Below are positions 7,496 to 60,055 of a stretch of 64,000 nucleotides of DNA, piece by piece (positions within the stretch are counted from its first letter, which is position 1; each line of letters opens with the position of its first letter). A program made the translations under genes and the position numbers. The notes under the pieces were generated by a model that had not been told where the DNA came from, searched no databases, and saw only the letters and a program-made list of their open reading frames with translations. The stretch is taken from positions 165,292,001-165,356,000 of the forward strand of contig NC_086102.1 in NCBI RefSeq assembly GCF_963921235.1, read 5' to 3'. The DNA comes from Mobula hypostoma. Its lineage: Eukaryota.

Positions 7496-7624
7496 CTGAC
7501 GAAGGGTCTTGGCCTGAAACGTCGACTGCACCTCTTCCTACAGATGCTGCTTGGCCTGCTGCGTTCACCAGCAACTTTGATGTATGTTGCTTGAATTTCC
7601 AGCATCTGCAGAATTCCTGTTGTT
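7496..7624 (+). mobile_element. Short Penelope-derived element carrying a hammerhead core; 11-bp TSD
   Basis: Starts CTGACGAagggtcttggcctGAAACGTCgactg. TSD TGCTAATGATT at 7485-7495 and 7625-7635. Near-identical to the copies at 38919 and 59923. Confidence 0.9.
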
Positions 7625-8089
7625 TGCTAATGATTTAGACTTGTATTTAAGTGGCTTGATAAAGAGATTGATACAAAATTGACTGGTGATAACAATGAAG
7701 AGGAAATCTTTACACTGAAGGAAAATAAATATTGGGAATGAAATTGGTAAATGGAATTTAATCCAGAGAAGTATGTAATAATGTATCTGAGGAGGTGCAT
7801 CAAGGCAAAAGAATATATAATAAATAGGATATTAATGGATGTGGAGGAATGAGTTGATCAATTGCTGCCTTTAATAAGCTAATATTTTACTCAATGGTAG
7901 CCTGGTGTTTCTTTTGTGCTAATTTATGAATATTGTCCTTTAGGATTACTTTTAAAAAAATTAAGTTGAATGAAAATGATGCAGCATTGCATGTCAGTGC
8001 ACGTATTCGTTATCTGCATGTACTTTTATCTGGGTTTTATATTTTTAATTCTTGAGAATTTCACAATGTCATCACACCATTATATTTCC

Positions 8090-8588
8090 CCAGATGTGGC
8101 CCTGATGTTAATAGTTGTCATTAAGTGGGTAAAAATTCAGCATGTCACCAAATACTTAACACACTTGTACAAGATGCACTGTAAGAAGTACCATAACTGG
8201 TTGCATCATGGCCTTGTATGTCAGTTCCAACACAGTAATGCAAGAAGCTGTGGAGAGTTGTGGACACAGTCTAGTCCATCATGAGCACAGCCCTCCCCCA
8301 CCACCGAAAGCACCTACATGAGGAACTGTCTCAAGAAGGTTGCATTGATCATCAATGATCTTGGCAATGTCTTCATCTTGCTGCTACTATCAGGCAGGAG
8401 ATACCAAGACCTGAAGTCGCACAACACCAGGTGCAGGAACAGCTACTGTCTTGAATTGACCTGCATAACCCTAATCCTATCTCGGAAGTGGAATGCTACA
8501 GATCATCTCTTTGTTACTATGGGCTAGGTTTTAATTGTGATTTTGCACTAATGTTTTGCAGTCTTTTTCTTCACTGTCTTATATAATC
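8090..8588 (+). mobile_element. Rex1/Babar-like fragment
   Basis: ORF 8318..8527 reads CLKKVALII...LLLSGRRYQDLKSHNTRCRNSY. Confidence 0.7.
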
Positions 8589-8590
8589 TA

Positions 8591-8657
8591 CAGTACTTTG
8601 CAGAAGTCTGAGACACATACATATAGCTAGGATGCCCAAGACTTCTGCACAGTACTG
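8591..8657. mobile_element. 67-bp Tc1/mariner-type MITE
   Basis: TA|cagtactttgcagaagtct...agacttctgcacagtactg|TA: imperfect TIRs of about 19 bp with a TA TSD. Confidence 0.85.
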
Positions 8658-8719
8658 TAGGGTGCCATTACGATGATGAAAGATTGGTTATGGTTGTTTT
8701 TTTTTTGGCTGTGGGGGAA

Positions 8720-9075
8720 CTTGAGGTCAATTAAAACAATGAAGTGCCTAGATAGAGTTAATAAGAAGATCAATCTCCCTGTCAGAAGGATCAAAAACCA
8801 TGGGATTACAGACTCAGAGTGACTGGTAGAATTAGAGGGGATTTGCGGATTTTTTTTCTACCTAGAGGGTAGTAGGAGTCTGGAATTAATTGCCTGAAAG
8901 GTTGTAGAAGCAGAATACATTATCATAGTTAAGTAGCATTTGATTGTTCACTTAAAATGTATGACTAGCAGGGCCACGAATCAAGTGTTGGAAGATGGGG
9001 TTAGGCTAGACAGTTCTTTTTCTACCAACACAGACATAATAGGCCGAACGGCCTTCTGAGTTGCAAATTTTTCTA
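8720..9075 (+). mobile_element. Old CR1 3' fragment
   Basis: Degenerate RVVGVWN*LPE motif and a CR1-like tail (ggccgaacggcct). Confidence 0.6.
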
Positions 9076-9958
9076 TGAAGTAGGAAAAATAAGGCAGTCT
9101 CCATTCATTCTTATCTATTGCAGCTGATCCATAAATACATAACCTTTTAAAGTAATGAATCATTGTGTTTGACTTGTAACATTGGCCTTTATATTCACTG
9201 CAATCTGTTCTTTTCAGAATAGCTGTTCGGCAATTGCAAGCTATATTAAACTGATATTCTGATTTTGTTGTTTGATAGTTGCTTCATTTTTTTATGGTAT
9301 TTTTTGGCTGTGATAATTTATAGATGTGGTTCTTTGGAATCACATTTATGCAGTTTGTTTGCATAAGCTGAATAAAAATGACATGGAAGGGCATGAGTCA
9401 GTACACATACTCCAGTAATATCTGGTTGTTTTACACTTTTATTTCCAGTTGGCAATTTAAAATTATGGCCCTATCTGTACTTTAAATATGTGATAATGGC
9501 ATGTGTACCTAATAAGGGCCAGAACCATTTCTTCAAACTGTGTGAATAGTTGTCACTCACAAATGACAAATGCGCCGTCATTTGCTCTTTTCACGGCTCC
9601 CTAAAATCTATACCCTGGAATCAGGGCGATGAAATTAGCTGCTGTGTAAATTGTGTGTCTGAATGGTTCATTATCTAATCACCATTGGAGCTAGAATGAT
9701 AAAATAGATTTGATTCTGAGAAGAGCCATGGCAGATGAATTCAACTATTTTACAATTTGCACTTAATTTCTTATAGAAACAAAAATGGTGGGGTTCAGAA
9801 TTAAATGGGATATTGAATACAGTAGTGCACTTTCTAAATGCACTGTTGCTATCTTCAGTTTATTATTACATTTATATCAATGTACTCTGAGAAGGTACTT
9901 CTCTAACTTCTATTAACAAATCTTATTTTAAAAATTTCATTGTAAATGTCTCTTTCAG

Positions 9959-10134
9959 GAGCTTTTGAGGATGATGGTATTGTTCATATTGAAGGAAGTG
10001 TGGATCCTGTTCGCGATATTGAAATCATTCACGAAGAACTGAGACTAAAGGATGAAGAACTCATTATGCCCATTATTGACAAACTGGAGAAAGTGGCAGT
10101 GAGAGGAGGTGACAAAAAACTAAAACCAGAATAC
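9959..10134 (+). CDS. OLA1: OLA1 internal coding exon (equivalent to human exon 5), 176 nt
   Basis: Acceptor tctttcag|GA and donor TAC|gtaagt. Translates (R)[58 protein letters not shown], which closely matches vertebrate OLA1 as I recall it. Confidence 0.97.
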
Positions 10135-12009
10135 GTAAGTAAAATATCAGCCCCATCTCTCTCAGTCACCCCCTGCTTTTCTCCGGCTGTGTATGAAATA
10201 ATTGAAATGCACAGTCGATCTACTTTCTGCTTGTTATCCTTGGTCATTCTGTGACAGTTGTATTAAAGGACTGAGTTTAACATGATATTTCTGTATATAA
10301 ATTATAAAATTCTGAGGCCAGGAGTTGTAGACATCATTAGCACTGAGTTATTCATTCAGTGGGTAACCTTGGGTCAGAATGCCAGGCTAATGAAAGTATT
10401 TGGACAGACCTTTTACATGTTCAGAGCACTATACAGATCTTTAAGCCTTGTGCTTGATGTGACAGCTAGGGAAAATAATTCAAACTTATGATTTTTACTC
10501 GTGCAGAGCATCATTTCTGTTCTACAAGTTAAAGTTCTGGCCTTTTCATTATTTTCTCTGTCATTTATCTTGATGAAGCTATCCTGACTCTTTGTTGTAT
10601 TAACCAGCTGGGCCATTTCACCTGCTGAAACCATTAGGGGACTCGGTGTTTTCTCAGATTAATCCTCCTGACATTGGTTTTTGTGATGATGGCTGGAGCA
10701 GGCATTCAGAATTTGCAGGTGGCCAGTGACGCACATAATTGCTGACAATTTTAGGCAATGAATAAAAATGGTCTGCATCACTTGTCAAAGGTTGTATGTA
10801 AAGATGCCAAGTGAAATCTCCTGGATGCCTTTTTAAGCTATAAAGAATAGTTAGTGAGGATGATGTTTAGCATTTTCATATTGTAATGCATGTGCAGGTT
10901 GTTAGTGTCATGTCATTAAATTTTAAAATTGTAGAAATCAAAAATGTGATTGTCATGAAGATGTTCTGATGGAATAGAAAATTTACTACTTCGCAGATCT
11001 TTCATGTTTTTCTCACTGTCAATGTTCATCATATTGGCCAATTATAAAATTCTGTTTTGTATTTTTGGGGTAAAATGATCCCGAGTTTATATACTTGAAT
11101 TTTTGTAGAATCTTGCTATTTAAATGACTGCTTATCTTGCAAGTATTTAGACAATTAAAAATTTAATGTTAAGAACATTCTGTCTTTAGTACTGTTGCTA
11201 AAATATTTCCATCACAAAATATTTATCAGAAAATCTTATGTATACATTTTTGTACATAAGAGTCAAGCTTGACCTTTTAAACCTGCCTGCCTTTTATTAC
11301 CACCTGCTTGTAAAGGAAATTGTGCCACATGCAGCTCTCGATTCAGAGCAGTGAAATGGATAAGGAAAGGCTTTAAGAGTTCAGTTTGTGTCACTTGCTG
11401 TTTGCCGTTTCCATTTCACAGATGATTAATCTTTCTTTAAGGAACGGACAGAGAAACAAAGCAAGTTGTCTTCCTGCAGTTGCACCTTCTGAATGCTCAT
11501 TGGTTTGATAACTAGAAGGCCTTTAAATTTCCTGTTGAGAAAGATGTTCTGAAACTGAATGTACTGGTTGGAGATCACCAGCATGATTCTGTTACTATTG
11601 TGCAATTGAAGTGAATTTTCCTTTTCGTTTTCTGGAAGTGGGGAGGTATTGGCAAAAAGCAAATATAGAATAAGCTTTTTACTATTTTTGCTGGCTTCTG
11701 TGAGGTTGGATAAATGTGGATGTTTTATTTAGCTTCTTGTTCTCCCTTTATTTTCCATGTCTTCAGTCATTTATTTATTTTAATCCTGGTTTCCAATGTT
11801 GCTTTTCTCACACAAACTAGTGAGAATGATTACATATTTTTGAAAAGGTTATGTTGAAAGTTAACAAAAGTATTTTTCCCTTCCATTCCATGAAGCTTTT
11901 CCTTTGAAATAAAATACTATTTCAACAACTGGAAAATAATTGCCCAATTCTTGTAGAGTTAATTTACTTTTATAGATTGTAACACATTTGTTTTTGTATA
12001 ATCTTTTAG

Positions 12010-12090
12010 GATATAATGTGCAAAGTCAAGAACTGGGTTATAGATGAAAAGAAACATGTGCGCTTCTATCATGATTGGAATGACAAGGAG
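12010..12090 (+). CDS. OLA1: OLA1 internal coding exon (exon 6 equivalent), 81 nt
   Basis: ttttag|GAT...GAG|gtaaga. Translates [27 protein letters not shown]; phase 0/0, in frame with the previous exon. Confidence 0.97.
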
Positions 12091-12319
12091 GTAAGACTTG
12101 GAGCAATGTATTATATATATAAACTGCATTACATGTCATTTCATCCGACAAAAATCTTGTAATTAGGTTGTAAGAAGGACTGTTGTATAATTTACTTTCC
12201 TAGTTACTTAAAATGTCTCACATGTAGTATGACAAATATTGTTAAATTGATTCTTATTTGGTCTCTTCTTAGAAAGAAATTGAGCTCTGAAGTCTGCTTT
12301 TTTTTGGCTTTTTTAACAG

Positions 12320-12417
12320 ATTGATGTATTGAATAAACATTTACTCTTGACTTCAAAGCCAATGATTTATTTGGTTAACTTGTCTGAGAAAGACTACATT
12401 AGAAGGAAGAATAAATG
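12320..12417 (+). CDS. OLA1: OLA1 internal coding exon (exon 7 equivalent), 98 nt, with the NLSE G4-like motif
   Basis: ttttaacag|ATT...TG|gtgagt. Translates [32 protein letters not shown](W). NLSE in place of NKxD is characteristic of YchF/OLA1 ATPases. Confidence 0.97.
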
Positions 12418-14189
12418 GTGAGTTTCCCCACTGGAAAGAGAAAACGTGACTCTTTAAATTTATCTTCATCTGTGCTTTTATCTGTAAAAGCTAATGATAG
12501 AATGTTCCTTAGGTCAGATCTTAAATACAATGTTCGTCATAATGTCTCAAAACAGTTTTTAAATGAGAACTTTATTCTAATGCTAGTTTGATAGGTGTAT
12601 ATTAATGTAACATGGGTAACTATGAATAACCTTCATAATCTTTGGAGTATTAACTTAATGAAGTTTCTTATTTTGCGTTTTCATTGAAGAAAATTGCAAA
12701 ATTGAAGACTAAAAGTGCTCTCAATGCATAATTTATTCATTTGTACCTAAATGAGCAGACATTTGGAATAGAAATTATCTATGATTAAAGGAAATGAAAA
12801 CTAGAAATATGGAGGGTTAAAGAATATTTCTTAATTGCACACTTGAAGTAAATATAAGTAATTGTTCTAATTTGGATTATAGTACATAACTGGTATGGTA
12901 GCCGTTGTGGGTTATTTTGTATTTGTTATCAGCAGGATCACTGAGGAAATGATGCCAGTACAAGAGGAGTAAGACTAAAATAAATTTAAAGATTGAAGAC
13001 AATCTTAAATGAGTAAATTATCTTCTCCTCATTTATTAATATATTAACTCTGGTTTGTTCCTGTTGATTCTAAACATGGAAACAATGTAAAAAAAAGTCC
13101 TTTATTATCTGCCCCTGACTGATATACTGGTTTGTGTCTTCATTGTACTTCTATCTTGTATGCTAATTATTACTGTATGAATTGAAAACTTTGTAAAATA
13201 TGAGATTAATTTCCAAAATTGAAAGGATTTCACACTCATTGAGTTGACCAGAAGTGAAGATAGTGTGGTGTAATTGCACAGTTAATAATAGACCCCAATA
13301 ATAAACAAACTTTCAGGAGAAGTTTGCCTATGATTTAACTTTCCACTTGTAGTTTTGATTAGAGTTTATTATTTCCTTTGAACATGTATAGCTAGTAGAA
13401 TTAAAACATTGTTTTTGCTGGATGAACTGTGAATCTTTACTTACAACGTAAAGAAGCTTGCTTTGTAAGGTTCATGATTCATTGTTGAATCATAGAATTA
13501 AAAATGTGCAGTGTACTGTTATCTGTCTTTGTCAGAGGATCAAAGTCATTGCAAACGAGTGATGTACCAAAAGCAAATTTGCCACATAGCCATTTTTTTC
13601 TGAACAATTTGCTGCCTGCTGTTCCTGTTTTCCCTCCAGCAAGTCACTGACTACCCCCTGCACATCCCTGCCCGTAAAATAATGATTAAGGGAGTATTTG
13701 TCATACATTTATGAGTGGAAGCATTGCGTGATGTAGAAGGCATCTACTGAAATTGGGGATCCTTTTTTTCTTCTTTATATAGATCGTATCAAAACTTTAA
13801 TGCTCTATTTTTCTCTGCACAACATTTGTACCAGGGTTTAAAAAAACATACATTTGAAAACAATCATAACAGGAGGTTTGTGTGTGTTCAAGTTATTGTC
13901 ATAATGTACCAAGTCAGTACTTGCAGTTTCCAGGTGTGAAAGACTCATGCAGATAACATTTATGGTGGCTGTTTCTTAATTAATATCTTAACTGATGCAC
14001 TTTAGCTTCATTGGTGCTTGGAAAATATTGGCTCACTGATAAAACATTTGTCTTGAATTAATTATATTCATTGTTAAGAGACAAAAATTGGATTAAATAT
14101 ATGAGGAATATGGACAATTACAAGTAGTACAGGAAAATTAGTTTTGAATTACCTAAGTCCCATAATACAATTAGTTTGTACCTGCAAAT

Positions 14190-15365
14190 ATACAAAGATC
14201 AACATACATTTATCATGAAAATATACATTGTAGTATATCTGACTCATACGGCCAGATTTGGGAACAGCTTCTTTCCAACTGTGATAAGACTGCTGAATGG
14301 ATCCTGACCCGGATCTGGGCTGTACCCTGCAAATATCCGGACCTGCCTCTTGGTTTTTTTGCACTACCTTACTTCCCATTTTTCTATTTTCTATTTATGA
14401 TTTATAATTTATATTTTTAATATTTACTATTTTTAACTATTTTTAATATTTTTAATTTTTAATATTTGTAATCCAGGAAGTGTGAAGCACAGAATCAAAT
14501 ATCGCTGTGATGATTGTATGTTCTAGTACCAATTGTTTGGCGACAATAAAGTATAAAGTATCTCCTTACAGGCATCCACAAAACAAAGAAACCAATTAAA
14601 ATCCATGAAAACAAAAGAAGACTGTTGAACACCCAACGTGCATGGAAAAACAAATCTTTTAAACAATAGAAGTAAGCAAATAGTATTCAGAACTGAGGTT
14701 CATGAAAGTGAGTCCACAGCCAATCCAGGAGCCCGTTAGTTGCAGGCCATAGCCTTGGTCCAGTGCAGAGACAAGTAAGCCTCAAAGTGCAGCAAGTTGA
14801 ACCAGCGTATCCCTTGCCCCTGGCCATGACACCCTGGCCTTTTCATTCTGATCCGGCGCTTAAATCGTCCAAACCGTGATTCGTTCCTTGCTCCTGGACC
14901 CGGGTCCTGCTGCTTCGATGCGCTCGCAGGCCTTGATTCGGCCTGTACCTGACCTTTCCAATTTGCTCAGTGCTTAAATCAATGAAACCTTGGGTCTTTT
15001 CTCACTCTTGGGCCTGGGCTCCACCTTGATTCTGCTTTGCCTCCGCTCACCTTGCCTCAGTTCTTCTGCATCGAATTGCCTCTAAGTCTGCTCCAGCAAC
15101 GGCAATACATAGGCTCACTGCCCGCTGTCAGGCCTGGACCCTACTGCCTCGATTCGGCTGGTACACTCCACACCACAACCGTGTTGCACCTTCGAGACTT
15201 CAGTTCACACCGCAAGAATGCCAGGTCCTACAAGCAATTCAAAAGCTATTGTTTGCAGTGATCGTTTACCATAAAAAGAGTGATTAATAAAGTATTTAGT
15301 TGTTTTCTTTGTTTTATTTGTCACCAGCAAGTAGTCGCTGAGCTTCACCAGCTCCATCTTAAACG
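14190..15365 (-). mobile_element. Non-autonomous retroelement (aagatgg-type head, Rex-like tail) with a nested + strand Rex1/Babar 3' end at about 14245-14520
   Basis: A GC-rich, non-coding body stands out from the AT-rich flanks. The nested piece reads RFGNSFFPTVIRLLNG and ends gacaataaagtataaagta. Confidence 0.55.
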
Positions 15366-15829: not shown

Positions 15830-16070
15830 TTTAACTTGGTTTGTTAATTCTACTAGTGAGTCTGGGAATTTTGCAGTGACAATACTGGTGATATTATCCC
15901 CCATACTTTGAGGTGCCAGCTGCTGTTTGTCCGTGTGTCTGAGGAATAAGAGAGAGCAGGGAATTCTGCTTTGCAGACTGTGACCTTGTTGCTGGGTTTG
16001 AGACCTTGGTCTCTAAATAGTCTTTTCCTTGGTTTGGTGAAAGTTGTCATCATGTATGGGAATTGTCATT
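15830..16070 (-). mobile_element. RTE-clade LINE fragment
   Basis: ORF 15853..16053 (FTKPRKRLFRDQGLKPSNKVTVCKA..PALSYSSDT) resembles the RTE FGRLRKRVF...TK..VY.AV..P.LLYG.ETW region. Confidence 0.65.
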
Positions 16071-22107: not shown

Positions 22108-22240
22108 AGTCCTGATGAAGGGTCTTGGCCCAAAATGTCGACTGTACTCTTTCCTATGGATGCTGCCTGGCCTGCTGAGTTCCTCCAGCATTTGTGTGTG
22201 TTGCTTGGATTTCCAGCATCGCAGATTTTTTCTTCTTTGT
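22108..22240 (+). mobile_element. Short Penelope-derived hammerhead element with a mutated core
   Basis: agtcCTGATGAagggtcttggcccAAAATGTCgact: GAAAC has become AAAAT, and both changes are at CpG sites. The family tail follows. Confidence 0.85.
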
Positions 22241-23949: not shown

Positions 23950-25040
23950 GAGATATTCCTTTTATCCTATCCATTCTTCCACACTCACCACTACTTAAAA
24001 CTATTTTCTCTTTTCCCAGTTCTAATGAAGGGTCTTAGACCTGAAACGTTAACCTATTTTGCTTTTCCACAGGTTTCTGGCTGATCTACTGAGCATTTCT
24101 AGATTTTTTGTTTTGGTTTCAGATGACCTTAAACTGCTGTTTTTAAAAATTTCAGCTCTTCCATCTTCTACTGAGCACGGCTTGTTTTCTGTTTTATTTT
24201 TGTTTCAGATTACCTTAAACTGTTGATTTTTTGATTTTCAGTTAGCCCCTCCACCTTCTCTTCTACTAACTCTCTTAATTATGACAAAGGGGCCCAGAAT
24301 TGAATGTTAACTGTTTCCCTTTCCATAGATGCTCTTTGCATTTTCTATTAATCACTATTAGCATTCCTGGAAGAAGCATGGGAGTCAATTCAAACTTGAA
24401 GCACTTTCTCGTGGGATGTATGTCTCCTTCCCTCATTCACCCTCAATGATTCCCATTCTCCTCATCGATTTTTGATATGTCTTGACCAAAACTCAGTTCC
24501 ACCGCCATCTCTTTCCTCAGCCAATATCTCAAGAGTTTCAGTGCAAAACCCATTCTTTCACCTTGCCTCACTGCACCATCAATGGATCAAAAAGGCCCTT
24601 CCAGGTGAAACAGTGTTCAGTTATACTTAACAATCTCTTATTTTACATTTGGTGTTTATGTCATTATCTCTCCTATTTTGGAGAAACCAGATGCAGATTG
24701 GGAATCTGCAGAATACCTCCATTCAGTCTGCAAGGCTGATGCTAAACCTGTGTTCTATCTGTCTGTGGCCTTGTAAGATTTTCAATAAAACTTAAAATAA
24801 GCCTGAGAACAGCACCTCATTTTCTGTGTAGGCAAATTGAAGCCTTTAGAACTCAATACAGAATGGAATCATTTCCGATAACTTGCTTTCTCTGTATCGG
24901 AGCTGACCAGTTTAATTAGGTTATAAGTGTTTTGTTACATTAATTTAAATTTTCACTCTCCAGAAATTTCACATGATGCCCTGGACATTTCCAGCATTTT
25001 CCTTTTGGTTTCAGGTTTCAGTAGCTCATTTTGTTTTCCT
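23950..25040 (+). mobile_element. Old Penelope-like element cluster (GIY-YIG remnant, eroded hammerheads)
   Basis: ORF 24482..24739 (KRPFQVKQ...LLFYIWC...SYFGETRCRLG) is GIY-YIG-like. A hammerhead-like cagttCTAATGAagggtcttagacctGAAACGTT is at 24017-24050, with a more eroded copy near 24280. Confidence 0.7.
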
Positions 25041-28050: not shown

Positions 28051-30129
28051 AGTAATGTAAATTAAAGAATTACCAAATTAATTAATTATCATGGCTTTAA
28101 TTTTAGATTTTTTTTTAATATACAGAAAGTGTCACTTATTATGGCAACTTTTTTTGAAATTGCATTACTTAAAAACAAAAAGCATAGCATTAATTGAGGA
28201 AATAAAATTACCTGTTTGATATGCAGATGGAATGTTAAGTCAAAACTGGTTTCTTTGCTTCTATTATTGGTAACTCTGGTACTAATATCATAAAGTCTTT
28301 TGCCTCACCTCTTACATTGTCAATCAATGCATTGTTACATCAAATAGTAACTGAAAGAAAATGTCTTTGTGAAATGAGTTCCTGTTGAAGATTGTAACGC
28401 ACCTTATTGTGTATCTCCTACAAATAAAGCTGCATTTATGAATTTATGATGTGATGTACTAATAAAGTCAAACGCACTGTGGGAAGCTGCTTATCTTCAC
28501 AGCAGTCAGATTTCTTGAAACATTAGTAAACTCACCATTTATTTTTACCTGTAGTTTACTTGTATATTTTTCCTATGAGTCGTGCAGTCTAAGTCGCAAT
28601 GAAGCATCATTAGGGGGCTGAGAAGAGAATAGGCAGGATTGGACAATTTTTCTGAAAAGCTACATATTGTGAACTCCAACACATAATTTTAAACTGTATG
28701 AATACACACAGTAACAATTACCAGTTGAAGAGTCTATTCTATGAATTTATGGCAGAAAGTAATTGAAAGAGTTCTGCATATAGGTACATTTGAAAAAGCT
28801 GTTTTTACACATCATTCTGACATTCTTTTGTAAATTATTTTTCTTTTCTCTCTAAACCTTATGTAATTTAGATGATCTTTTCACATACAGAGGTCAAAAA
28901 TATGCCAAAATCTGTGGAAATTACCAGTCTAATTGCATCTAGGTGACAATAAAACTAACTCCCTAGGGAACTTTGACAGTCTGCAATTGATCTTGGCTAG
29001 CTTAACTGTACCTAGTTTGTTCCTATATGATATGGCCTATGCAGTAGCATTCAATGGGCAAATATGGAGAAGAATAGTAAATTTAAAGAATTTAAAAAAA
29101 CCTAATTTCCATTGTCTGCAATTTTTGAAGCAATTGGCAAAGGAGGAAAAACTTAAGAAATAGTAAATAATTGGGGGCAGATCTTCTTTTCACTGCATTG
29201 TTGCAATTTGTATTTTCTGTGACATTAGTAGTAACAACATGAAAATGGTACCCAGCTGTTAGTGTTATATCAGAAAATTTCAAGATATGAAATACCCAAC
29301 TGATTTCAAGATCTTTTCTCAATACATGTTGGCAAACTGGCCTGTAAATCATTCCACCAAACACATGAGTTGCATCTACCTGTACTTAGCCTCTGCCTAG
29401 ATTCTTTACTCAAGTTTCCCAGCCCCACTTTTTTCAGGATGTGGAAGGTTAGATAAGATGACCAACCTTACCTAACAAATGATACAGATTAGTAGCTTCA
29501 AGAAGCAAGTAAGCCTCAGATCTACTGGTTGTCAGAAGTTTTTAAAGAATCTTATATCTCTAATGTATAATTTTAAAACTACTCTGATAGATTTAATCAG
29601 GATATTTATTTGTCTTTGATATTTCAAAAACTAATAAAATAAAAGCAGATTAAAACACTAACAAAAACTAAAAATTTTGTTATATTTAAAGTATAGACAC
29701 TGCCAGTTATTTGTAGTTACCATGTGTGCAGCATTGCCAAGAACCTTCAGTTCTCTCCTTGTGCATAGCTTGGGAGCTGGATGTCAGCTTCGCTCAGCAC
29801 ATTGATGGTGTGGAGCAAACAATGCTGGCATTTCACCTCCAGCATGTTCAGGACTTCTGTTGTTCATAATGCCTGTACGGTTTAAAAAGGCAGCGTTCCT
29901 CAAGGGCATTTAGGGATGGGAATTAAATGCTGACCTTGCCCAGACTGTCAAAATGAGTAAATTCATATATATATATATATGTGAAGCTGGTTGTTTCCTT
30001 TAGAACTTTCTGCTGTCAGTTAGTTAGACCATTGTTCTTTTTTCATGTTGCATCATTATAGATAAGTATTCCTGTGTTAATATCTTCTCTAATCACTTAA
30101 TCCTAAGAATTAATAAGAAAAGCAACATA

Positions 30130-38500: not shown

Positions 38501-38917
38501 CAGTATGCAGAACTTTTGTTTTAAATAGAACAGGAGAAAAATGCTATTATTAATTATAATTTTAGCATGAGTTGCTAACTCCCGAATTTTGTTGTTTTGT
38601 GTATCAGGAAGCTTGCACTCCATAAAGAACTTGTGTTTCCTGTTTTAATTTGCACTTCATTCTACTATATTGTTCCGTTGTCCAATTTAAATTACAATGT
38701 CATATGACAGTGACAAAAATTGATGGTGTCATAGTAAGGATTCTTGAAATTTGGGTGGAGCAATGACAGATGGAATTTAATCTTGACAAGTTTAAGGTAA
38801 TGTATTTTGAGAGGACAAACAAGGATAGGATGTACATAATGAATGGTGTGGCCCTAGGGACCGTTGACGAACAGAGGGAACTCTGGATACAAATCATAAA
38901 GTGAAGGAAGCTTCAGT

Positions 38918-38955
38918 TAGTCCTGACGAAGGGTCTCGGCCTGAAACGTCGACTG
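38918..38955 (+). ncRNA. Minimal type I hammerhead ribozyme motif with an intact core
   Basis: Stem I UAGUC(38918-22)/GACUG(38951-55); CUGACGA at 38923-29 plus an extra A; stem II GGGU-cucg-GCCU; GAAAC at 38943-47; GUC cleavage triplet at 38948-50. Stem III is the palindrome ACGU. Activity is untested. Confidence 0.8.
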
Positions 38956-39052
38956 TACCTCTTCCTAGAGATGCTGCCTGGCCTGCTGTGTTCACTAGCA
39001 ACTTTGATGTGTGTTGCTTGAATTTCCAGCATCTGCAGAATTCCTGTTGCTT
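38919..39052 (+). mobile_element. Short Penelope-derived hammerhead element
   Basis: Near-identical to 7496-7624; no clear TSD. Confidence 0.9.
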
Positions 39053-39229
39053 GTACACCATAGGAAGGATATTTTTGTGTTGGAGGGCATGCAGAGGAAA
39101 TCACCACTGTGTTTCTTGGAGTGCAGTTAAACTGCTAGAAATATGTCAATGGCAGTGATATCAAGCAACTACTTGTGGTTGCTGAGTTTACTCCTAACTT
39201 GATTGCAGCTTTGACCAATGAAGCTACAA

Positions 39230-45544: not shown

Positions 45545-46185
45545 CCAACAAGAGCAAATCTGCAGATGCTGGAAATCCAAGCAACACACACACAAAATGC
45601 TGGAGGAACTCAGCAGGCCAGGCAACATCTGTGGAAAAAAGTACAGTCAATGTTTCGGGCTGAGACCCTTTGATAGGACTGGAGAAAAAAGGATGAGTGA
45701 ATTTAAAAGGTGGGGGAGCGGAGAGAGAAACACAAGGTGACAGGTGAAACCAGGAAGGGCAGGGATGAAGTAAATAGCTGGGAAGTTGATTGATGAAAGA
45801 GACACAGGGCTGGAGAGGGGGGAATCTGATAGGAGAGGACAGAAGGCTATGGAAGAAACAAAAGGGGGGAGAGAGTACCAGAGGGAGGCGATGGGCAGGC
45901 AAGGAGATAAAGTGAGAGAGGGAAAAGGGATTGGGGATTGGTGAAGGAGAGCAGTGGGGGGTGTGGGGGACATTACCAGAAGTTCAAGAAATCGATGTTC
46001 ATGCCGTCAGGTTAGACGCTACCCAGACAGAATATAAGGTGTTGTTCCTCCAACCTGAATGTGGCATATCTGAATGGAAAGTGGAAGTGAACGGGTGGCT
46101 ACTGGGAGATCCTGCTTTTTCTGGCAGACAGAGCGTAGGTGCTCGGTGAAGCAGTCTCCTAATCTACCTTGAGTCTCACCGATAG
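45545..46185 (-). mobile_element. Penelope-like element 3' part (GIY-YIG end, pyrimidine-rich pseudo-LTR, eroded hammerhead, tail)
   Basis: The minus strand reads IGETQGRLGDCFTEHLRS...LEEQHLIFCLGSV*PDGMNIDF. The hammerhead remnant cagtcctatcaaagggtctcagcccgaaacattgactg is at 45644-45681. Confidence 0.85.
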
Positions 46186-46372
46186 TATCCTTGCAAGTGG
46201 AACATGTGCTGCACCTGCCCCTTAACCTCCTCCCTCACTACCATTCAGGGACCCAAACAGTCCTTCCAGGTGAGGCGACATTTCACCTGTGAGTCTGTTG
46301 GAGTCATATACAGTGTCCAGTGTGGCCTCCTGTGTATCAGTGAGACTTGACGTAGGTTGGGAGACCGCTTCT
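46186..46372 (+). mobile_element. Penelope-like GIY-YIG fragment in inverted orientation
   Basis: YPCKWNMCCTCP...IQGPKQSFQVRRHFTCESVGVIY...CGLLCISET*RRLGDRF. Confidence 0.85.
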
Positions 46373-48344
46373 TTTTTAAAAATATATGTACCTTTTTAAC
46401 TATTTCCATGAAACTACGGGTAATTGGAGCAGCCATTTAATTGGGCCAAAAATATACTGACCCTGATGTGTCCTAATTAACTGGAATCCACTGTATATTG
46501 AAGTTTGAAATTTAAGACCTAGACAAAAACAGTAAAGGATAAGCATTTGCACTAAATACTTAGATAAAATATAAAATCTTCTTGCACACACGTTTTAAAT
46601 GCCCAGAATGCAAATGATGAAGCAGGAAAAGTGTTCTTTGTTAAAATGAGTTCTAAGGAGTGATAGTTGCAGTATCCATGAGTTGAAGAGGGATTTATGA
46701 TGACAGAATAAACTTCTGGGAAAGTTATTATGAAGTTTGAAAATAGCAAGGGCACAATTAGTGGGAATAACAGAATAGGTGCAGCAAGTTTTTGGAGCAC
46801 TGAGGAGGATTGGTTATTTTAGAAGTTGGATCTTGTGTGAGTTGAAGTATTACAGTACGATTGTACTGAAGGTAGTCTTGGGTTTACAAGTATTGTGGTG
46901 GATGATTTTTTTTATGCTGCTGCCAAAATGTGGCAATAATTTAAATTATTTGTTTGGAAGAGTTGAATGGGTGCAGGGGCTTTTATGCTTAATGTGGAAA
47001 TGTTTTATGGAAGTGAGGAAATAACAAATTAAAGGGGATGTGTATCAAACTCAACAACAGCAACTTGTACTTGCATCATCCCTTAAAATAACATGAAGAA
47101 ACTTTGCAATGTGATCCACAAGAGCATACTGAAACAACCCGGTGGTAATGAGCTTATGAGGGCAGATGATTTAAAATTTGGTCTTAGAAGTGGTTTTTAA
47201 AGGAGGAAAGGGTGCAGAGTTTAAGGAGGGGATTAAAGAATTTGGGGTTTTAGTAAATGAAGAGAAATGCCTAAAATGGCATAGTACAGGTTATGACAAG
47301 ATTGAAAGAATTTGGGCTCCATTTCATGGAAAATTGAACCAAGAGTCTATATGAATACTTACTAGGTCACAAAAATATGCTGCAAATGAGCATAAGCAAA
47401 GGCAGAATTTGGAAGCACAAAGACAGAAGTTTATAATGTTATAATGACATAGTTGGCATCATTATTGGTGGTTGCCTGCAGTCCTCTCTTGCCATCGCCT
47501 GTCTTCCATCTATTCCAGATCATGCCTGCCATAGCTGATGTTAGAATTGTGAAATGCATTTTTTTTGAGTTTTCTGGACCTTTGAACGGCTTTCTCCAAG
47601 GTGGGGCTGTAACTTTACAGCTGACCATAAAATCTGAGACATATTGATCCTTTAAAAAGGTTAGAAATTAATATTTCAAAAACCAATAAAGATAATCTAT
47701 TCATTCTGCAAGTTTTTTTTAAAAAGCTTGCACTTAAAAACACTTTACAGTTTCCAAATGTTTACTATATCCAATTATTCAACATGCAGGTACCAACTAT
47801 CAAGTCCAAATATAAATATTAATTAATAGAACTTACTGCATAATTTACAGGCATCAGTTTCTTTTGTCACTTTTATCTTGTTCACAGTTCTCTTGTAGCA
47901 ATGCTCTCTTTTTCACTCTTAAATGAAATAAAAATGTAGCTTATTCAAGAATGCTAGAGTAAAGAATATAGTCTATATGCACAACCACTGCTTGACAGCC
48001 ATATCCCTTGGTGAACCCTGCTTTCATTGGATCTTCTGATAAAGCTAAAATGTTCTGATATTATTATCCTAATCAGAAGCCTGTTTCTGTAAAACTGCAG
48101 TGCCTATAAACCATCTGCAGTCTGATACAGAAGTTTGTTCTGTTGCATTCGCTACCGTTGAATACCATTCTGGCTGAAGAAAGACAGGTTCACTCTGTGT
48201 TAACTGCTTAGTTATGGGTCAGTGTTTGCTAAATTCTAAAGTTGCCAGATTCTGTTATTTCTCAGCAAAAATTCCTTTCAGATTTCAGTTCATTAATATC
48301 ATTCAAAAGACCCCATATGTTTATCTCTCAAACTTTGTGTGTTA

Positions 48345-51460: not shown

Positions 51461-51464
51461 GATC

Positions 51465-54836: not shown

Positions 54837-55729
54837 CTGTCCTCATCACTATGTTCTCCTATATTTTGTTTTCTTGTGCCCATCTTTATATAGAATAGGA
54901 ATTTCTTCTGTAGCTATTCTGATATTTTGGAGATTTTGGATATTTTGTCCAAAAGCTTCTTTAACAGTTAGAATGGTTGATACTTTAAGTAACTTTTACT
55001 GAAATGAAAGCGCTAAGCCCATAATTCACTTAATACCAAGTGCAAGCTGGCTAGAACAGGATAGCAAGAGGTTACCTCAGTAAGGAATGACATTGAGAGC
55101 CTACACTTATTTTTCTGAACAAGTATGACATTTTTGAGATAAGGTATTGTTGTTGCTAAGGAGGGATATTGTATTTACATTGGCGTGTAATATTCACTGC
55201 CACCTTGTGGAATTGTAGTAGACCTGTATACTGAAACAATTCTGATTTTAAATGTAAAATTTTCTGTGCTTGACAATGATGTTACATTTTTTTAAAACAT
55301 TATAAATGTCAACCATATTACCACCTACTGATATAGGTATAGTAAGTAATTAATGCTTTCAAAATTGAATTTTCTTTTGTCAGAGAGGATATCATTTGGA
55401 TTTGAGATGGAATTTTTCTCTTTCATATGCTGTCTATCACCCTTCCTGCTGTTCCAAACTATCTCAACTGACTCCATTTTTCTCTGCGGGGTCTGGCTCT
55501 ATTATGTTTACTTTGGCTTTTGTTATGACCATCACCTTTTCCCAACCTTCTTACTCACTTTTGCAAATCTCTTTGCTTGTTCATCCCTCCCATTTCTGCC
55601 TTTCCACCAAGTAGTCTGTCATTGTCTTTCCCCAACCCTGTCTTTTGTCTCTTGGTCACCCAGACTGGAGTTCTTCCTGTTACAATTTGATTTGTTGTTT
55701 TCTCTCACTTTGTTTGTTGAATATATTTT

Positions 55730-56545
55730 GGCATAACCAAGTTCTCAAACAGCTGGCATCAATCTTGGAACAGAGGCAAATCACCACAAATGTTCTCCCA
55801 CAAACATCGGCAGGAAATGTCCACATCACACGACTTGTACCAGCAGGCCAACCCCCCAAGCACCACATAACATCAAAAGATGTAATCATTCTGCAGGTTG
55901 CTCGGGATTGGAAAATGGACGTGGACTTGGAAAAAAAAGCTTGTGTTTCCCCCAGACATTGTGGCTACAACACTCTGCCCAAATATGGTCCTGTGGTCCA
56001 CAACAGCCAAGCTGGCATATGTTGTGGAATTGACAGTACCATAGGAAGATGGTGTCGAAGAAGCTTATGAGAGGAAAAAGACCAAGAACTCTGAACTGGC
56101 AACTGAAGCTGCCCAGAATGGCTGGAAGACCAAGATTTTCCTTGTAGAAGTGGGATTCAGGGGATTCATTGCTACATCTACGACCAGTCTATTGAAGAAG
56201 ATGGGGGTGAGGGGACACTCCCTCCAACAAGCAATCAAGTCCTTGTCAAATGTAGCAGAAGAAAGCAGCAATTGGATTTGGATTAAAAGGAAAGGCAACA
56301 ACTGGGCTGCAAGATGAAGACAGGAGGGTATGGAACTGAGGGGGGTGTATCTGGGACGCCAGGTAGCACCGTTGAGCCCTCTGGAGACGTCGTGGGCTTA
56401 TCAACGAAGCGTCAAAGAAGGAGAGTGCCCACCTGATGACCCCGATGACGTACCTACCCTCCTTGTCACCACTCCAAGCCCACTGCCAACATCAAGAGTG
56501 CCGACTTACCATAGGGATTGAAACATCAAGTCCTAGTAGCTCTAC
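55730..56545 (+). mobile_element. Second, divergent Hero-like RLE retrotransposon 3' end
   Basis: WHNQVLKQLAS...DWKMDVDL, then after a frameshift VFPPDIVATTLCPNMVLWS...VVELTVP*EDGVEEAYERKKTK...VEVGFRGFIA...WIWIKR. Confidence 0.85.
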
Positions 56546-56869
56546 TATACTTCTGAGTCATAGATGACAGAATCTCACTTGTCGTAAAGCACCCATTTTC
56601 ACTAATCCTATTTAATTTCCCTCTCATTCCCATCAATTATCCCCAGCTTCTACCACTCAGTCAAGTACTAAGGGCAATTTACAATAGCTGATAAACCCAT
56701 CACCCACGCGTCTTTGTTCATAGAAGGAAATCCATATGGTCACAAATTCCACACAAACAGCACAGCAGCTCTGGATTAATTCTGTGTCACTGGAGCTGTG
56801 AGCAGCAGTTATACTGGTTTATACCACTGAGTCACCTCTAATCTCCGAAAGAACAATGGAAAGCTGAAA

Positions 56870-57260
56870 CTGGTGTCTGGTTGATTCATAGAATACAGAG
56901 AGTAGGATTGGAAGGCTGATACTTTAGTTGGAAGTCTGACTCATGGTGTTCCACAAGGATCAGTGCTTGGACCTCGGTTGTTTGTAATACATATCAGTGA
57001 TTTGGATGAAAATGTAAAACAGGTGTATTATCAGGTTTGAGGATAACACCAAGATTGCCCAAGTTGTAGATGTTGTAAAGGACTATTAAAGAATACAGTG
57101 GGGATGTACTATAAATCCATTACAGATATGGGCAGAGAAATGGCAGATGGAGTTTAATCTGGACGAGTGTGAGGTGTTGCACCTTGGGAGTTCAAATGAA
57201 AGGAGGAAGTACAGTATAAGTTAATGGAAGATCCCTTAATAACATTGAGGTACAGACTCC
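56870..57260 (+). mobile_element. CR1 RT fragment
   Basis: GVPQGSVLGPRLFVIHISDLD and WAEKWQMEFNLDECEVLH. Confidence 0.85.
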
Positions 57261-58699
57261 ACTTAACACAAAAGCATTATTTTACTCTTAAAATTCATTT
57301 TTGTATGTGCACACTGAAATGTAGTAGATAGATTTGCCTTTAGCACTTCTGAAGGAATATGCCTTCTAAAATGTGTGGAAGACAGGGACCACATCATCAA
57401 AAGTAAATAAGTATCTTTTATTAATTTTGTTAAATAAAGACTTTAAATGATGAGTTTCTGTCCAGTTTTGCTTTGCAGTGTTTTTCCCTGAATTAGTGTG
57501 ATGTGTGATAGGTCGCAATATATTCAGTTTAAATTGAGTTTCCATGATCTTTAGAGCTAGTTTAAAAACTTTGGGCAGCTAGCTTTTGGCATACAAATTA
57601 TTCATCATTCTTCAGTTGCCTATCATTATTCACCAGTGAAAATTTCAATTAATTTGTGTGATATGTGGTGGCCTCCAGAGAGAGTCAAGAAATTGGACAT
57701 TGTATCAGCAGAACTGTCTGAAAGAAAAACAAGTATCTTGATTGATTTTTCCTGTCCACCTAAAATCCCGGGAACAATTAGATAACTTTATTAAGTGCTA
57801 TTATTTTTTTCTCACTTGTCAATGTTAACATAAGAAAAGTTGTTTACTCACGAAATGTCCTTTTACTGTGAATGTACAGCTCATTGGAACAAAATGATGG
57901 AAACTGATTGCATTTAATTTCTTGGGATCAGTCCAAAGCTGTATTGAATGGGTGTGTATTTAATCTCATAATTGTTCTTGTCTCCTGCTGGTTTAAAGAA
58001 GAATTAATGTTTTGAATAAACTCTGCACAATTTGTTTCTCTTGAAGTTAGTAAACCTTCTTACCTTTCTCTTTGGTGTTCAAGTAATTTAGTACTACTTT
58101 GCCCCACTCTTACATTTTTATCTGGAAATCTATATTATTATTGTTAGCTTTTTTTGTATTAGCCACAGTTGGATTTGTTCTTGTGTATGCTGGTTCTATT
58201 AATTAAGTTCTATGTTTAGATTTGCTTTCAGAACACCCTTAGAACATTTAAAAAACACTGTCTTCAAATAGATGACTGAACCATGCAACTCATTAGTGGC
58301 AATTTAACTATAAATTGGTGATTTTTATTTTGTTGACTCATGGAAACAGAGCTCACCAGTAAGTCAGAAACATTGTCCATCCTTAATTATCTCTTGGACC
58401 AATTGACTGCTGGACCAAATTAAGGGACAATTAAGAATCAACTTCATTAATAGGTCCAGAGTCATTTAGGATGACTTGAATATGTTCAGCAGACTTCCTT
58501 CCTGACTTTCTCCAATACTACAGTTGTTTCATGAAAATGGTACTGTGCTATCATATTATACAAATGTATTCAATAACTTTGGTGAACTGAAATGAGTCAC
58601 CCTGGATCAATAGTTCAGGCTCTCTGCTGGTTGGTAACCTAACCAATAGGCTAATTGAAACCAAATGTCTTGTAATATTTTAGATAGTTCAAAAAAGCC

Positions 58700-59730
58700 T
58701 TCGCCTGTATAGTCTTATAGCTGAAACAGGCCCTTTAACCCAACTCATCCATGCCAATGGTGATTCTCATATATGCTAATCCCATTTGCCTACATTAGGC
58801 CTGTTTCCCTGTGTTGTTTTCCTACCACTCTCCAAATTCCTTTCGAACATTGAAATTGTATCTGCCTCAATCATCCCCTTTTGTGTAGGAAAATTTACAC
58901 TACAGATCTCCCTTAAAATTTTCCCCTCTCACCTTAAATCTATGCCCGCTATGTTTGGACACCCCTTACCTTGGAAAAGGACTGTCTACTCTTTCTGTCT
59001 TCCTCATAATCTTATAAATGTTTGTTTTCCCCTCAGCTTCCCCCCCCCCCATGTTCCACCCAATCTCTCATTGTAACTAACGCCCTTCATTCCTGATGGA
59101 TCTCTTCGGCACTCTTTCCAATGTGTGTATCTGTTCTGTTGTGTGGTGCACAATATCCCAGGTGCAGCCTTAGCATTTATTTGTACGGCTGCAACATGAT
59201 GTCTTAATTCTTGTATTCATGTTTACAAAGGCAAGCAAGCCAATGCTTTCTTGCTGTCCTATGTAACTATGTCTCCAGGTTCATGGAACAATGAAAGTGT
59301 ATCCAAGATCTTTCTGTATACCAATATTCCCTGACTTTTATCGTAAATGTCTTGTCAGTATTTAATGTCCAAGAAAACTTTACCATATATTATTCTGATT
59401 ACATTCCATCTGCCACTGCTCTGCCCAATTCTCCATTTGATCTCTGCTCCTCTATATCCTTAGACAACCTTTTTACTTCAATTCCAATTTTTATATGTCA
59501 GCAAACTTGCTAATCAGACCACCTACATTCTCATCTAAGATATATATATATATCTGGTTCTATATATAGAACCAGAGAGGTCCTGGCACCTTTTCTTAAG
59601 TGAGGTACGCAACAGAATACAGGCTTCAAGTCAGAAGACCAACCTTTTCAATACCATTCTCTACCTTCTGTCACCAAGCTAATTTTGGCTCCAATTTGCC
59701 AACACACCTTCAATCCCTAATGGGCCAGCT
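58700..59730 (-). mobile_element. Old CR1 fragment
   Basis: CR1-like tail (gaaacaggccctt...) and reverse-strand WAEQWQME and SKFAD remnants. Confidence 0.65.
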
Positions 59731-59922
59731 TCAATAATGATAGCCTTTTTTAATGGCATCGTTGCATTTTTAACTTGCAAGTAACTCCTGTCTTTGATTT
59801 ACTTTTTGACCCTAAAGATAAGTGCAACCTTGTACTGGTATTTCGGATTCTGAATGTAATTATCAGTTAAGCATATCTGACCATGCAAGTTCTATATAGA
59901 AAAATGGCAATTAAAAAATACA

Positions 59923-60055
59923 AACAACAGGAATTCTGCAGATGCTGGAAATTCAAGCAACATACATCAAAGTTGCTGGTGAACGCAGCAGGCCAAGCAG
60001 CATCTATAGGAAGAGGCGCAGTCGACGTTTCAGGCCGAGACCCTTCGTCAGGACA
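59923..60055 (-). mobile_element. Short Penelope-derived hammerhead element, antisense to OLA1; 11-bp TSD
   Basis: Minus strand tgtcCTGACGAagggtctcggcctGAAACGTCgactg. TSD TAAAAAATACA at 59912-59922 and 60056-60066. Confidence 0.92.

Follow-up and report, generated by a model that had tools for sequence, protein, structure and literature searches.

Short hammerhead-bearing repeats in a Mobula hypostoma window look like by-products of Penelope copying

The role of the hammerhead ribozyme in Penelope-like elements (PLEs) is still open. A window of 64,000 nucleotides from the ray Mobula hypostoma, the whole stretch of DNA analysed here, harbors repeats of ~130 bases that open with a minimal hammerhead and that the initial annotation took for a possible distinct ribozyme-headed, SINE-like lineage. 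Are these repeats a mobile element in their own right or pieces of a known one? The repeats of ~130 bases are genuine: each is a short copy of the terminal part of a Penelope-like retrotransposon, with the minimal hammerhead and ~100 further bases. They have the appearance of dead products left behind by Penelope copying, and not of a new ribozyme-headed element that propagates itself. That PLEs give rise to non-autonomous hammerhead units is, in broad terms, an idea already in the literature (Cervera & de la Pena 2014, PMC4209133; Li et al. 2026 preprint, bioRxiv 10.64898/2026.07.22.740005). About ten PLE 3'-end copies, all in the window, were inspected directly (Table 1).

Table 1. PLE-derived features of the window
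Feature	Position	Strand	Description
Short copy, young subfamily	7496-7624	+	begins at the first C of CUGACGA
Its hammerhead core	7496-7523	+	
Short copy, old subfamily	22108-22240	+	begins at AGUC of helix I (position -3)
Short copy, early-branching in the young subfamily	38902-39052	+	first called 38919-39052
Its hammerhead core	38923-38950	+	
Short copy, young subfamily	59923-60055	-	begins TGTC-CUGACGA
Its hammerhead core	60051-60024	-	
Fifth short copy, old subfamily, old and decayed	2321-2456	-	homology begins ~1-3 nt before the hammerhead core
Longer 5'-truncated PLE copy	45547-46234	-	GIY-YIG endonuclease C-terminal coding, ~300 nt CT-rich UTR, decayed hammerhead and tail, in that order
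Its decayed hammerhead	45680-45650	-	
Inverted endonuclease-coding fragment	46280-46385	+	abuts the 5' end of the longer copy
Three same-orientation 3'-end fragments, third PLE family	23965-24404	+	
First fragment of this cluster		+	UTR (~55 nt), hammerhead (24022-24050, CUAAUGA...GAAACGUU) and tail
Second fragment	~24168-24225	+	tail only
Third fragment		+	UTR (~70 nt), decayed hammerhead (~24282) and tail
Old PLE remnant	24807-25020	+	endonuclease C-terminal motif (EQHLIF), then decayed tail at ~24940-25020

A 33-nt hammerhead pattern matches exactly four sites in the window, against zero expected by chance, and these are the four copies originally annotated, beginning at 7496, 22108 and 38919 on the forward strand and spanning 59923-60055 on the reverse strand. 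Three of them (all but the 22108 copy) share 94-98% mutual identity, in agreement with their description as near-identical, and the 22108 copy is 81-84% identical to those three. Exact 11-bp target-site duplications (TSDs) flank the 7496 copy (TGCTAATGATT at 7485-7495 and 7625-7635) and the reverse-strand copy (TGTATTTTTTA at 60066-60056 and 59922-59912); thus, the two clean TSDs first reported are real, and the claim of independent retrotranspositions is supported, as insertions of a PLE end module. In a target-site check of the short copies, no TSD could be demonstrated for those at 22108, 38919 and 2321-2456(-), the sole candidate at 22108 being decayed, with 7/12 matches. All five short copies are single, with no tandem arrangement in the window. 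The 2321-2456(-) copy sits ~150 nt past the 3' end of an unrelated CR1-like LINE.

The hammerhead of these copies belongs to the minimal type I class described for PLEs, its sequence being CUGACGA-A-GGGU CUCG GCCU-GAAA-CG-UC^GACUG. Judged by sequence and folding, it has the CUGANGA and GAAA cores, a predicted H17 cleavage site, a helix I of 4-5 bp and a helix II of 4 bp, the extra base between positions 9 and 10.1 that precedes helix II, and a 1-bp helix III with the palindromic ACGU (15.2-16.2/loop 3), as in the PLE hammerheads of Cervera & de la Pena (2014, PMC4209133). The latter also occupy the same place, a non-coding repeat downstream of the GIY-YIG endonuclease, and, as here, they are mostly dispersed single copies, 'probably related to truncated PLEs'; in contrast, the young subfamily carries G.U at positions 10.1-11.1, where they carry G-C. 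The sequence is intact in the 38919 and 59923-60055 copies and, helix I excepted, in the 7496 copy, while the core at 22108 has decayed, its GAAACGUC box being mutated to AAAAUGUC, as first noted. The proposed Rfam scan left the ribozyme unrecognised at any threshold tried, as Hammerhead_1 (RF00163) matches nowhere in the window at the gathering threshold, nor within 38880-39080 when E values up to 10 are allowed, which is expected because helix III is only 1 bp long. The 5' strand of helix I is wholly missing from the 7496 copy and reduced to 3 nt in the 59923-60055 copy; most short copies lack a complete helix I, and a functional ribozyme is therefore not maintained at the head of the unit. 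The absence of a Pol III tRNA head was correctly annotated, since ARAGORN finds no tRNA-like sequence in the window and the unit opens with the hammerhead core, leaving neither a Pol III promoter nor a tRNA-, 5S- or 7SL-derived head by which it could be classed as a SINE.

The same module ends a longer Penelope/GIY-YIG copy, as had been proposed, and this copy links the repeats to PLEs. Its endonuclease coding is broken by a frameshift and stops, and translation of 46234-46015(-) yields GIY-YIG-type motifs (IGET..RLGD.F.EHLRSV, EEQHLIF and GMNIDF). A phmmer search with the endonuclease piece returned five relatives, one of them with a faint Pfam GIY-YIG match, although Pfam itself gives no score to the decayed 71-aa piece. 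On these motifs, the longer copies carry GIY-YIG endonuclease coding upstream of the module, as expected of PLEs. The inverted fragment abutting this copy forms with it inverted-repeat arms (46148-46184 and 46335-46371) that are 81% identical over 37 nt, an inverted 5' duplication being typical of PLEs (Craig et al. 2021). A PLE reverse transcriptase is absent from the window, where the only RVT_1 open reading frame, 3239-4663(-), belongs to the CR1-like LINE. In the contigs of four public runs, the 3' junction displays an A/T-rich flank consensus. PLE insertions are marked by TSDs of variable length (~10-15 bp), by targets rich in A and T, and by partial copies, inverted or in tandem, at the 5' end; the present insertions show this pattern in the two exact 11-bp TSDs, the A/T-rich flanks, the inverted 5' pieces at 46335-46371 and 38902-38910, and the same-orientation cluster at 23965-24404. 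Short copies occur in both subfamilies: those at 22108 and 2321-2456(-) share the diagnostic tail of the endonuclease-bearing copy at 45547-46234(-), and all three young copies of the window are short.

Where, then, do the 5' ends fall? Five of the ~10 PLE 3'-end copies of the window end within 16 nt of the 5' edge of the ribozyme, at -3, -3/-2, ~-1, 0/+1 and at or beyond -15 relative to CUGANGA. Compared with smooth truncation models, this clustering has a p of ~1e-4 to 1e-2 over the ~10 window copies, which agrees with the view that random truncation would not gather ends in this way. The earlier survey of PLE hammerheads (PMC4209133) does not map the starts of its single copies, whereas half of the copies here begin at this edge. 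On the other hand, the statement that all units start at the ribozyme holds for these five only within the 16 nt, as the 38919 copy has nine more family bases (38911-38919, CTTCAGTTA), matching an extension in the genome-wide contigs, preceded by 9 nt (38902-38910, TGAAGGAAG) that are an inverted copy of family positions -15 to -7 and mark a snap-back junction. Genome-wide family contigs share this extension over at least 15-20 nt upstream of helix I, which, together with the reach of the 38919 copy to at least -15, means that the ribozyme edge is not the sole 5' end; the public runs were used as contigs, a form in which RNA starts cannot show. Summed contig depth is flat across the unit (5-7.6 million over the hammerhead and 6-9 million over the tail), so few copies stop inside it. 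At the other end, ~101 nt separate the cut site from the end of the insert.

The explanation that we prefer, to which we give about an even chance, is that the units are mini-cDNAs running from an internal PLE reverse-transcription start back to an RNA 5' end at helix I. The endonuclease and reverse transcriptase of PLEs would insert terminal modules singly at AT-rich sites, by target-primed reverse transcription that generates TSDs of ~11 bp. Each insert would have as its 3' end the reverse-transcription start site of the element, ~100 nt downstream of the hammerhead cleavage site, and as its 5' end the end of the template RNA, at or within ~25 nt upstream of helix I. This template end would most likely mark the start of transcription at an initiator-like motif, YYA(+1)GTCC, overlapping helix I. 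In that case, the units would be mini-cDNAs covering the initial 130-150 nt of transcripts under the control of the PLE terminal repeat, with the ribozyme as a passenger. Both starts, that of transcription and that of internal reverse transcription, are inferred from published work and from motifs. Support comes from the PLE linkage, since the module also terminates a copy that has GIY-YIG-type coding and a CT-rich UTR, and inverted 5' snap-backs occur both in the long copy and in that at 38919. The clustered 5' ends, the flat contig depth and the presence of short copies in both subfamilies also count in its favour. Moreover, a perfect YYANWYY initiator motif (CCAGTCC, TTAGTCC or CCAGTTC) with A at -3 is found in three families, although it overlaps helix I (AGUC) and its conservation may stem from the ribozyme alone. 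In D. virilis Penelope, promoter and start site lie within the terminal repeat, the start site 46 nt ahead of a 75-nt intron (Schostak 2008) that ends at the 5' end of helix I (Cervera 2014, PMC4209133).

The only biochemically studied PLE, the Poseidon element PAc of Anolis, provides the closest parallel (Frangieh et al. 2024, PMC11167929). Its reverse transcription begins internally at +111-118, 85-92 nt past the cut, genomic insert ends coincide with those start sites, RNA up to +172 is required, and the product shortens when the RNA 5' end is trimmed. Both systems present the same order of terminal repeat, hammerhead, ~90-100 nt and insert end, as well as AT-rich targets; a product length set by the RNA 5' end and a hammerhead dispensable for insertion, both shown biochemically in PAc, would also be common to them. 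PAc differs in having an AC-rich stem-loop at the start site, which is not evidently AC-rich here, and an open reading frame starting inside the hammerhead. The latter arrangement does not transfer directly, because tail reading frames are not conserved between subfamilies and no frame is conserved across the tail. Should reverse transcription in PLEs begin internally and depend on downstream RNA (Frangieh 2024), each insert would lack part of the recognition signal and could not serve again as template; without a promoter and without the RNA downstream of the start site, the inserts would be dead on arrival.

A dedicated non-autonomous lineage, either SINE-like or akin to non-LTR retrozymes but monomeric, appears doubtful, though it is the most probable of the alternatives. 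Here, master loci made only of the terminal repeat (promoter, hammerhead, tail and downstream signal) would be transcribed and then mobilised in trans by PLE enzymes, and the young family of 130-150 nt would amplify itself. Such a lineage would fit with the shortness of all three young window copies, with the great abundance of the family in contigs of two species labels, and with a young core, CUGACGA, that lacks AUG and is followed by stops in the tail frames tried. The summed contig depth of the tail also exceeds that of the old PLE UTR by 10-60 fold, a contrast confounded by UTR divergence between subfamilies. However, the same 5' edge recurs in short copies of the old subfamily, shared with the endonuclease-bearing copy, most short copies are devoid of an intact helix I and of any promoter, and neither tandem units in the window nor high-depth head-to-tail joints are found, so that the distinct ribozyme-headed lineage first suggested is not supported. 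Animal non-LTR retrozymes (PMC7229834; bioRxiv 10.64898/2026.07.22.740005) are likewise short non-coding type I hammerhead units related to PLE terminal repeats, with monomers dispersed in vertebrate genomes, including a cartilaginous fish. Nevertheless, they are defined by tandem repeats and circular RNAs and mostly carry canonical hammerheads with loop-loop contacts, whereas the units described here are single, with a minimal ribozyme often lacking helix I, and show no tandem or circular junctions: five of five short copies stand alone, and no joint of unit length occurs among the best-supported joints of the four runs. The Sm-alpha and Sj-alpha SINE-like elements of schistosomes are also short, abundant, dispersed and hammerhead-bearing. 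In these elements a Pol III promoter forms the head and the ribozyme lies downstream of it, unlike the present units, which have no tRNA-like head by ARAGORN and bear the ribozyme at their extreme 5' end.

It is unlikely that the units are products of ordinary 5' truncation for which the ribozyme creates a hot spot, with the enzyme dropping off past the hammerhead, or jumping the nick left by cleavage onto the short 5' fragment and running off. The end cluster does lie at the hammerhead edge, and in single contigs of a related species a piece whose last bases are exactly GUC (window position 60024) is joined to a unit start, with 1-9 extra bases; in one joint, a unit beginning immediately after GUC (60023) follows the 3' end of another unit. 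Yet the enzyme meets the fold from its 3' side, where structure-induced stops are expected, and the copies end on the far 5' side, which makes the suggested stop at the ribozyme fold geometrically unlikely, and contig depth is flat through the hammerhead. The copies start ~30 nt upstream of the GUC cleavage site, in support of the view that they are not copies of the 3' cleavage product. Furthermore, PAc hammerhead mutants insert normally in vitro and RNA reads neither start nor stop at the cut (Frangieh 2024, PMC11167929), and the jump model still requires an RNA 5' end at helix I.

It seems highly improbable that splicing creates the 5' edge, with the pyrimidine tract and CAG/TAG before helix I acting as a 3' splice acceptor and splicing intermediates or products as templates. 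In three families helix I comes immediately after a polypyrimidine tract and CAG or TAG, and in D. virilis the 75-nt intron ends at the 5' end of helix I (Cervera 2014, PMC4209133). Spliced RNA would, however, bring exon 1 upstream of helix I, and yet the 7496 and 59923-60055 copies have the TSD directly at the junction; since the entire UTR is rich in C and T, such a tract does not mark the helix I position in particular, and no splice donor was identified. Finally, the proposal that the units were copied at unit length from a circular RNA ligated by the ribozyme, or arose by rolling-circle synthesis like retrozymes, compatible with a palindromic ACGU permitting dimer cleavage and with the retrozyme circles known in animals (Cervera & de la Pena 2020, PMC7229834), can practically be set aside, given that a lone genomic unit has one cleavage site and cannot release a monomer, that the window has no tandem units, that 5' ends spread across >15 nt, where a circle would be expected to have a single fixed junction, that across ~49,000 contigs of the four runs the best head-to-tail ('goes back') joints reach a depth of 33-48 against 6-9 million for the family, none of the best-supported ones being of unit length, and that the contigs of two probable RNA runs, which cannot exclude rare circles, contain no such joint.

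Returning to the mini-cDNA explanation, a broader and more tentative proposal is that in this ray lineage Penelope transcripts may begin at helix I, which would make the ribozyme the extreme 5' terminus of the RNA, and most retrotransposition may consist of abortive mini-copies, extending from the cap to a 5'-proximal internal reverse-transcription site, that would have left 10^5-10^6 ribozyme-bearing stubs in the genome. For annotation purposes, the units should be labeled as PLE terminal fragments, neither as a new SINE nor as a functional ribozyme gene. If the mini-cDNA explanation is true, such units would explain the abundance of lone minimal hammerheads in fish, amphibian and reptile genomes. 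If the units span from the transcription start to the reverse-transcription start, their hundreds of thousands of copies would constitute a natural record of both end points.

The four short ribozyme-bearing insertions listed in the initial annotation lie where it had placed them and align with one another over ~133 nt. Three of them (7496, 38919 and 60055, here the young subfamily), described there as almost identical, share 94-98% pairwise identity, whereas the copy at 22108, assigned with the long endonuclease-bearing copy and a fifth short copy to an old subfamily, is 81-84% identical to those three. The two 11-bp target-site duplications (TSDs) claimed are exact, TGCTAATGATT flanking 7496-7624 and TGTATTTTTTA flanking 60055-59923; no TSD was demonstrable at 22108, at 38919 or at the fifth copy. 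A 33-nt pattern spanning the ribozyme, allowing up to 3 mismatches, matched exactly the four sites and none of 100 shuffles. Profile searches recovered the module at the end of the longer Penelope copy (45547-45685, minus strand), as had been noted, together with the decayed fifth copy and two copies of a third family, and exact-pattern scans found 0 further copies in collections of metagenomes, viruses and prokaryotes. Within the third-family cluster (24085-24225, plus strand), a ~50-nt tail segment (ctactgagca...gtttcagat.accttaaactg.tg) is present in two places 83 nt apart, the latter being a tail-only fragment truncated within the tail. A weak match (E 0.03) to unit positions 65-133, the last ~70, at 29785-29864 (plus strand), ending in ...ttctgttgtt, may be an old tail-only fragment.

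Features of the window. In the 5' end column the first C of CUGANGA is +1 and the preceding base 0, the helix I 5' strand AGUC occupying -3 to 0.
Feature	Position	Strand	5' end	Remarks
Short copy 7496	7496-7624	+	0/+1	Young subfamily
Short copy 22108	22108-22240	+	-3	Old subfamily
Short copy 38919	38919-39052	+	at least -11 direct; template at least -15	Young subfamily
Short copy 60055	59923-60055	-	-3/-2	Young subfamily; T replaces A at -3
Fifth short copy (2441)	2321-2456	-	about -1	Old subfamily; decayed; profile search
Third-family copy	24012-24136	+		Profile search
Third-family copy	24271-24404	+		Profile search
Long copy	45547-46234	-		Endonuclease C-terminal coding, stop codon, ~300 nt CT-rich untranslated sequence, decayed ribozyme, tail
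CR1-like LINE	2590-4663	-		474-aa ORF with RVT_1 (E 8e-30) at 3239-4663, then 245-aa ORF with the usual C-terminal motifs
Penelope endonuclease N-terminal fragment	52080-51960	-		FYIGETECRLDAQFMKHL...ELPVA; interrupted by a different retroelement inserted at ~51960

The ribozyme reads (A)GUC-CUGACGA-A-GGGU CUCG GCCU-GAAA-CG-UC^GACUG, with both conserved hammerhead cores and the GUC cleavage site. Helix I is open and of 4-5 bp, helix II is of 4 bp and preceded by one additional base, and helix III consists of one A-U pair capped by CG, making ACGU palindromic. Helices I and II were recovered on folding, and positions 10.1-11.1 form G.U in the young subfamily versus G-C in the older one. The same traits characterize the minimal type I hammerheads described from Penelope-like elements (PLEs), for which action as dimers was supposed (Cervera & de la Pena 2014, PMC4209133), and by sequence the unit is predicted to carry a ribozyme of this class. 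Rfam scans, proposed in the initial annotation, gave no match to it at the gathering threshold or at E values up to 10, as expected with a helix III of only 1 bp. On folding, the tail showed no stem-loop better than those of shuffles (z = -0.7). A coding tail was also considered, starting from the AUG of CUGAUGA or from a later AUG, and rejected, since the frames are closed by consensus TAG/TGA or shifted by a (TG)n indel between subfamilies.

It had been proposed that all units start at the ribozyme. This is too strong, but 5 of the ~10 PLE copies in the window do have their 5' ends within one 16-nt stretch. Under simulated smooth truncation, this proportion was reached in a fraction of trials ranging from 1e-4 (uniform model, 0-700 nt) to 9e-3 (exponential model with a mean of 150 nt), and the non-random clustering of 5' ends at the ribozyme is real in this sample of ~10 copies. 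Among the five short copies, the helix I 5' strand is incomplete or absent in four. Ahead of the copy at 38919, the 9 nt at 38911-38919 read CTTCAGTTA and are therefore part of the element; the preceding 9 nt, TGAAGGAAG at 38902-38910, match family positions -15 to -7 in reverse complement, a small snap-back junction resembling that of the long copy. When contigs of four public sequencing runs were aligned at the 60055 locus, the loose ends at the 5' boundary gave the consensus ...CTCTTCCTTCAGTTA|GTCC in element orientation, its first 15 letters near-identical in all four runs (two positions G/A) and ~20 partly shared. Third-family copies reach at least 55 and at least 70 nt further upstream, a copy at 24807 extends into endonuclease coding and the long copy extends about 690 nt, while a fragment at about 24168-24225 is tail only.

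The long copy provides the connection to PLEs. Its coding part, interrupted by a frameshift and stops, contains the GIY-YIG-type motifs IGET..RLGD.F.EHLRSV, EEQHLIF and GMNIDF, and an inverted endonuclease-coding fragment adjoins its 5' end (arms 46148-46184 and 46335-46371), corresponding to the inverted 5' duplication typical of PLEs (Craig et al. 2021). Pfam gave no score on its decayed 71-aa endonuclease piece; phmmer returned 5 relatives, one having a faint GIY-YIG record and one coming from an unrelated metagenome contig (L001) in which the module was sought and found absent. Within the 64-kb window no Penelope reverse transcriptase was found. The CR1-like LINE, whose 3' end near 2590 is of the ...tgtactattctatg type, is unrelated to the neighbouring old Penelope copy ~150 nt downstream. 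A contig depth peak at 46243-46324 (~2.6 million summed in run X1) coincides with the best-conserved part of the GIY-YIG N-terminal coding in the inverted fragment and suggests a very large number of Penelope endonuclease fragments in the genome.

Two published systems, taken together, suggest how such units could originate as mini-cDNAs. In PAc, the Anolis Poseidon PLE, the hammerhead lies at the terminal repeat/ORF junction and reverse transcription begins internally at +111-118, 85-92 nt beyond the cut site; sequence as far as +172 is needed in the RNA, genomic insert ends coincide with start sites, a shorter RNA 5' end yields a shorter product, and ribozyme mutants insert normally (Frangieh et al. 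2024, PMC11167929). The ray units have about 101 nt between cut site and insert end, compared with these 85-92 nt. In Drosophila virilis, the Penelope promoter and transcription start lie within the terminal repeat, the start 46 nt ahead of a 75-nt intron (Schostak 2008) whose end maps to the helix I 5' end (Cervera & de la Pena 2014). A cDNA starting at the site nearest the RNA 5' end and running off past helix I would yield precisely such a unit. Three families have a perfect initiator motif YYA(+1)NWYY (CCAGTCC, TTAGTCC or CCAGTTC) with its A at -3; because the motif overlaps helix I, its conservation alone proves nothing. Inserts of this kind would have neither the promoter nor the RNA stretch lying 3' of the start site, and would thus be dead by-products, which fits their presence in both subfamilies, the broken helix I and the lack of tandem forms. 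We hold this account of the units, as dead by-product cDNAs reaching from an internal start site to an RNA 5' end past helix I, with about even confidence.

As the main rival explanation, the units would form a dedicated non-autonomous lineage having master loci of its own; the general proposal is already in the literature (Li et al. 2026, bioRxiv 10.64898/2026.07.22.740005), and we consider it less probable here than the by-product account, though likelier than the readings that follow. A reverse-transcription stop caused by the ribozyme fold, as offered in the initial annotation, is unlikely on geometric grounds, the enzyme reaching the fold from its 3' side. A splice-related 5' edge is likewise unlikely, given the TSD directly at the junction in two copies. 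Copying of a ligated or circular RNA, also put forward earlier, receives no support from the joints described below, none of which is of unit length.

Genome-wide, summed contig depth was used, a rough proxy only because all runs exist as contigs, with single-copy sequence near 8. Depth over the young unit (at least 90% likeness) is flat, 5-7.6 million on the ribozyme versus 6-9 million on the tail, indicating that few copies stop within the unit, and the young family is present at similar depth under a second species label. At the 60055 locus, the flanks at the 3' boundary, found at three adjacent positions (59920-59922), are long, A/T-rich and non-repeating, and the 5' boundary shows mostly short loose ends with a shared extension (288 contigs at 60054), long unique flanks being a minority (47 contigs at 60053). 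On the old long copy, tail depth is 10-60x that of the untranslated region, a contrast confounded by divergence between subfamilies. The depth drop over its ribozyme was rejected as a truncation profile, being an artefact of alignments that break at the variable linker between ribozyme and tail. A second insert 3' end ~16-30 nt upstream, suggested by loose ends at 45586/45588, was dropped because their consensus runs on as divergent tail. Head-to-tail joints are negligible: the deepest reach 33-48 in X1, the main DNA run, and up to about 310 in X5, from the second, related species. Among these best joints no unit-length one occurs, and no head-to-tail joint appears in two probable RNA runs, whose contigs resemble those of DNA runs and are uninformative on RNA starts, ends and circles. 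At 59893-60085, a few single X5 contigs join a ribozyme piece ending exactly at GUC (60024) to the unit 5' start with 1-9 extra bases between, or have a unit that starts with the nucleotide following GUC placed behind the end of another unit; these anecdotal joints possibly reflect in vivo cleavage and template switching.

Lone minimal hammerheads have been described as truncated Penelope copies since 2014 (Cervera & de la Pena 2014), initiation at an internal site about 90 nt beyond the ribozyme since 2024 (Frangieh et al. 2024), and Penelope-derived non-autonomous hammerhead units in vertebrates, including one cartilaginous fish, in a preprint (Li et al. 2026). Two points may be novel: that 5' ends accumulate at the ribozyme edge, and that this pattern can be read as marking the interval between the transcription and reverse-transcription starts.
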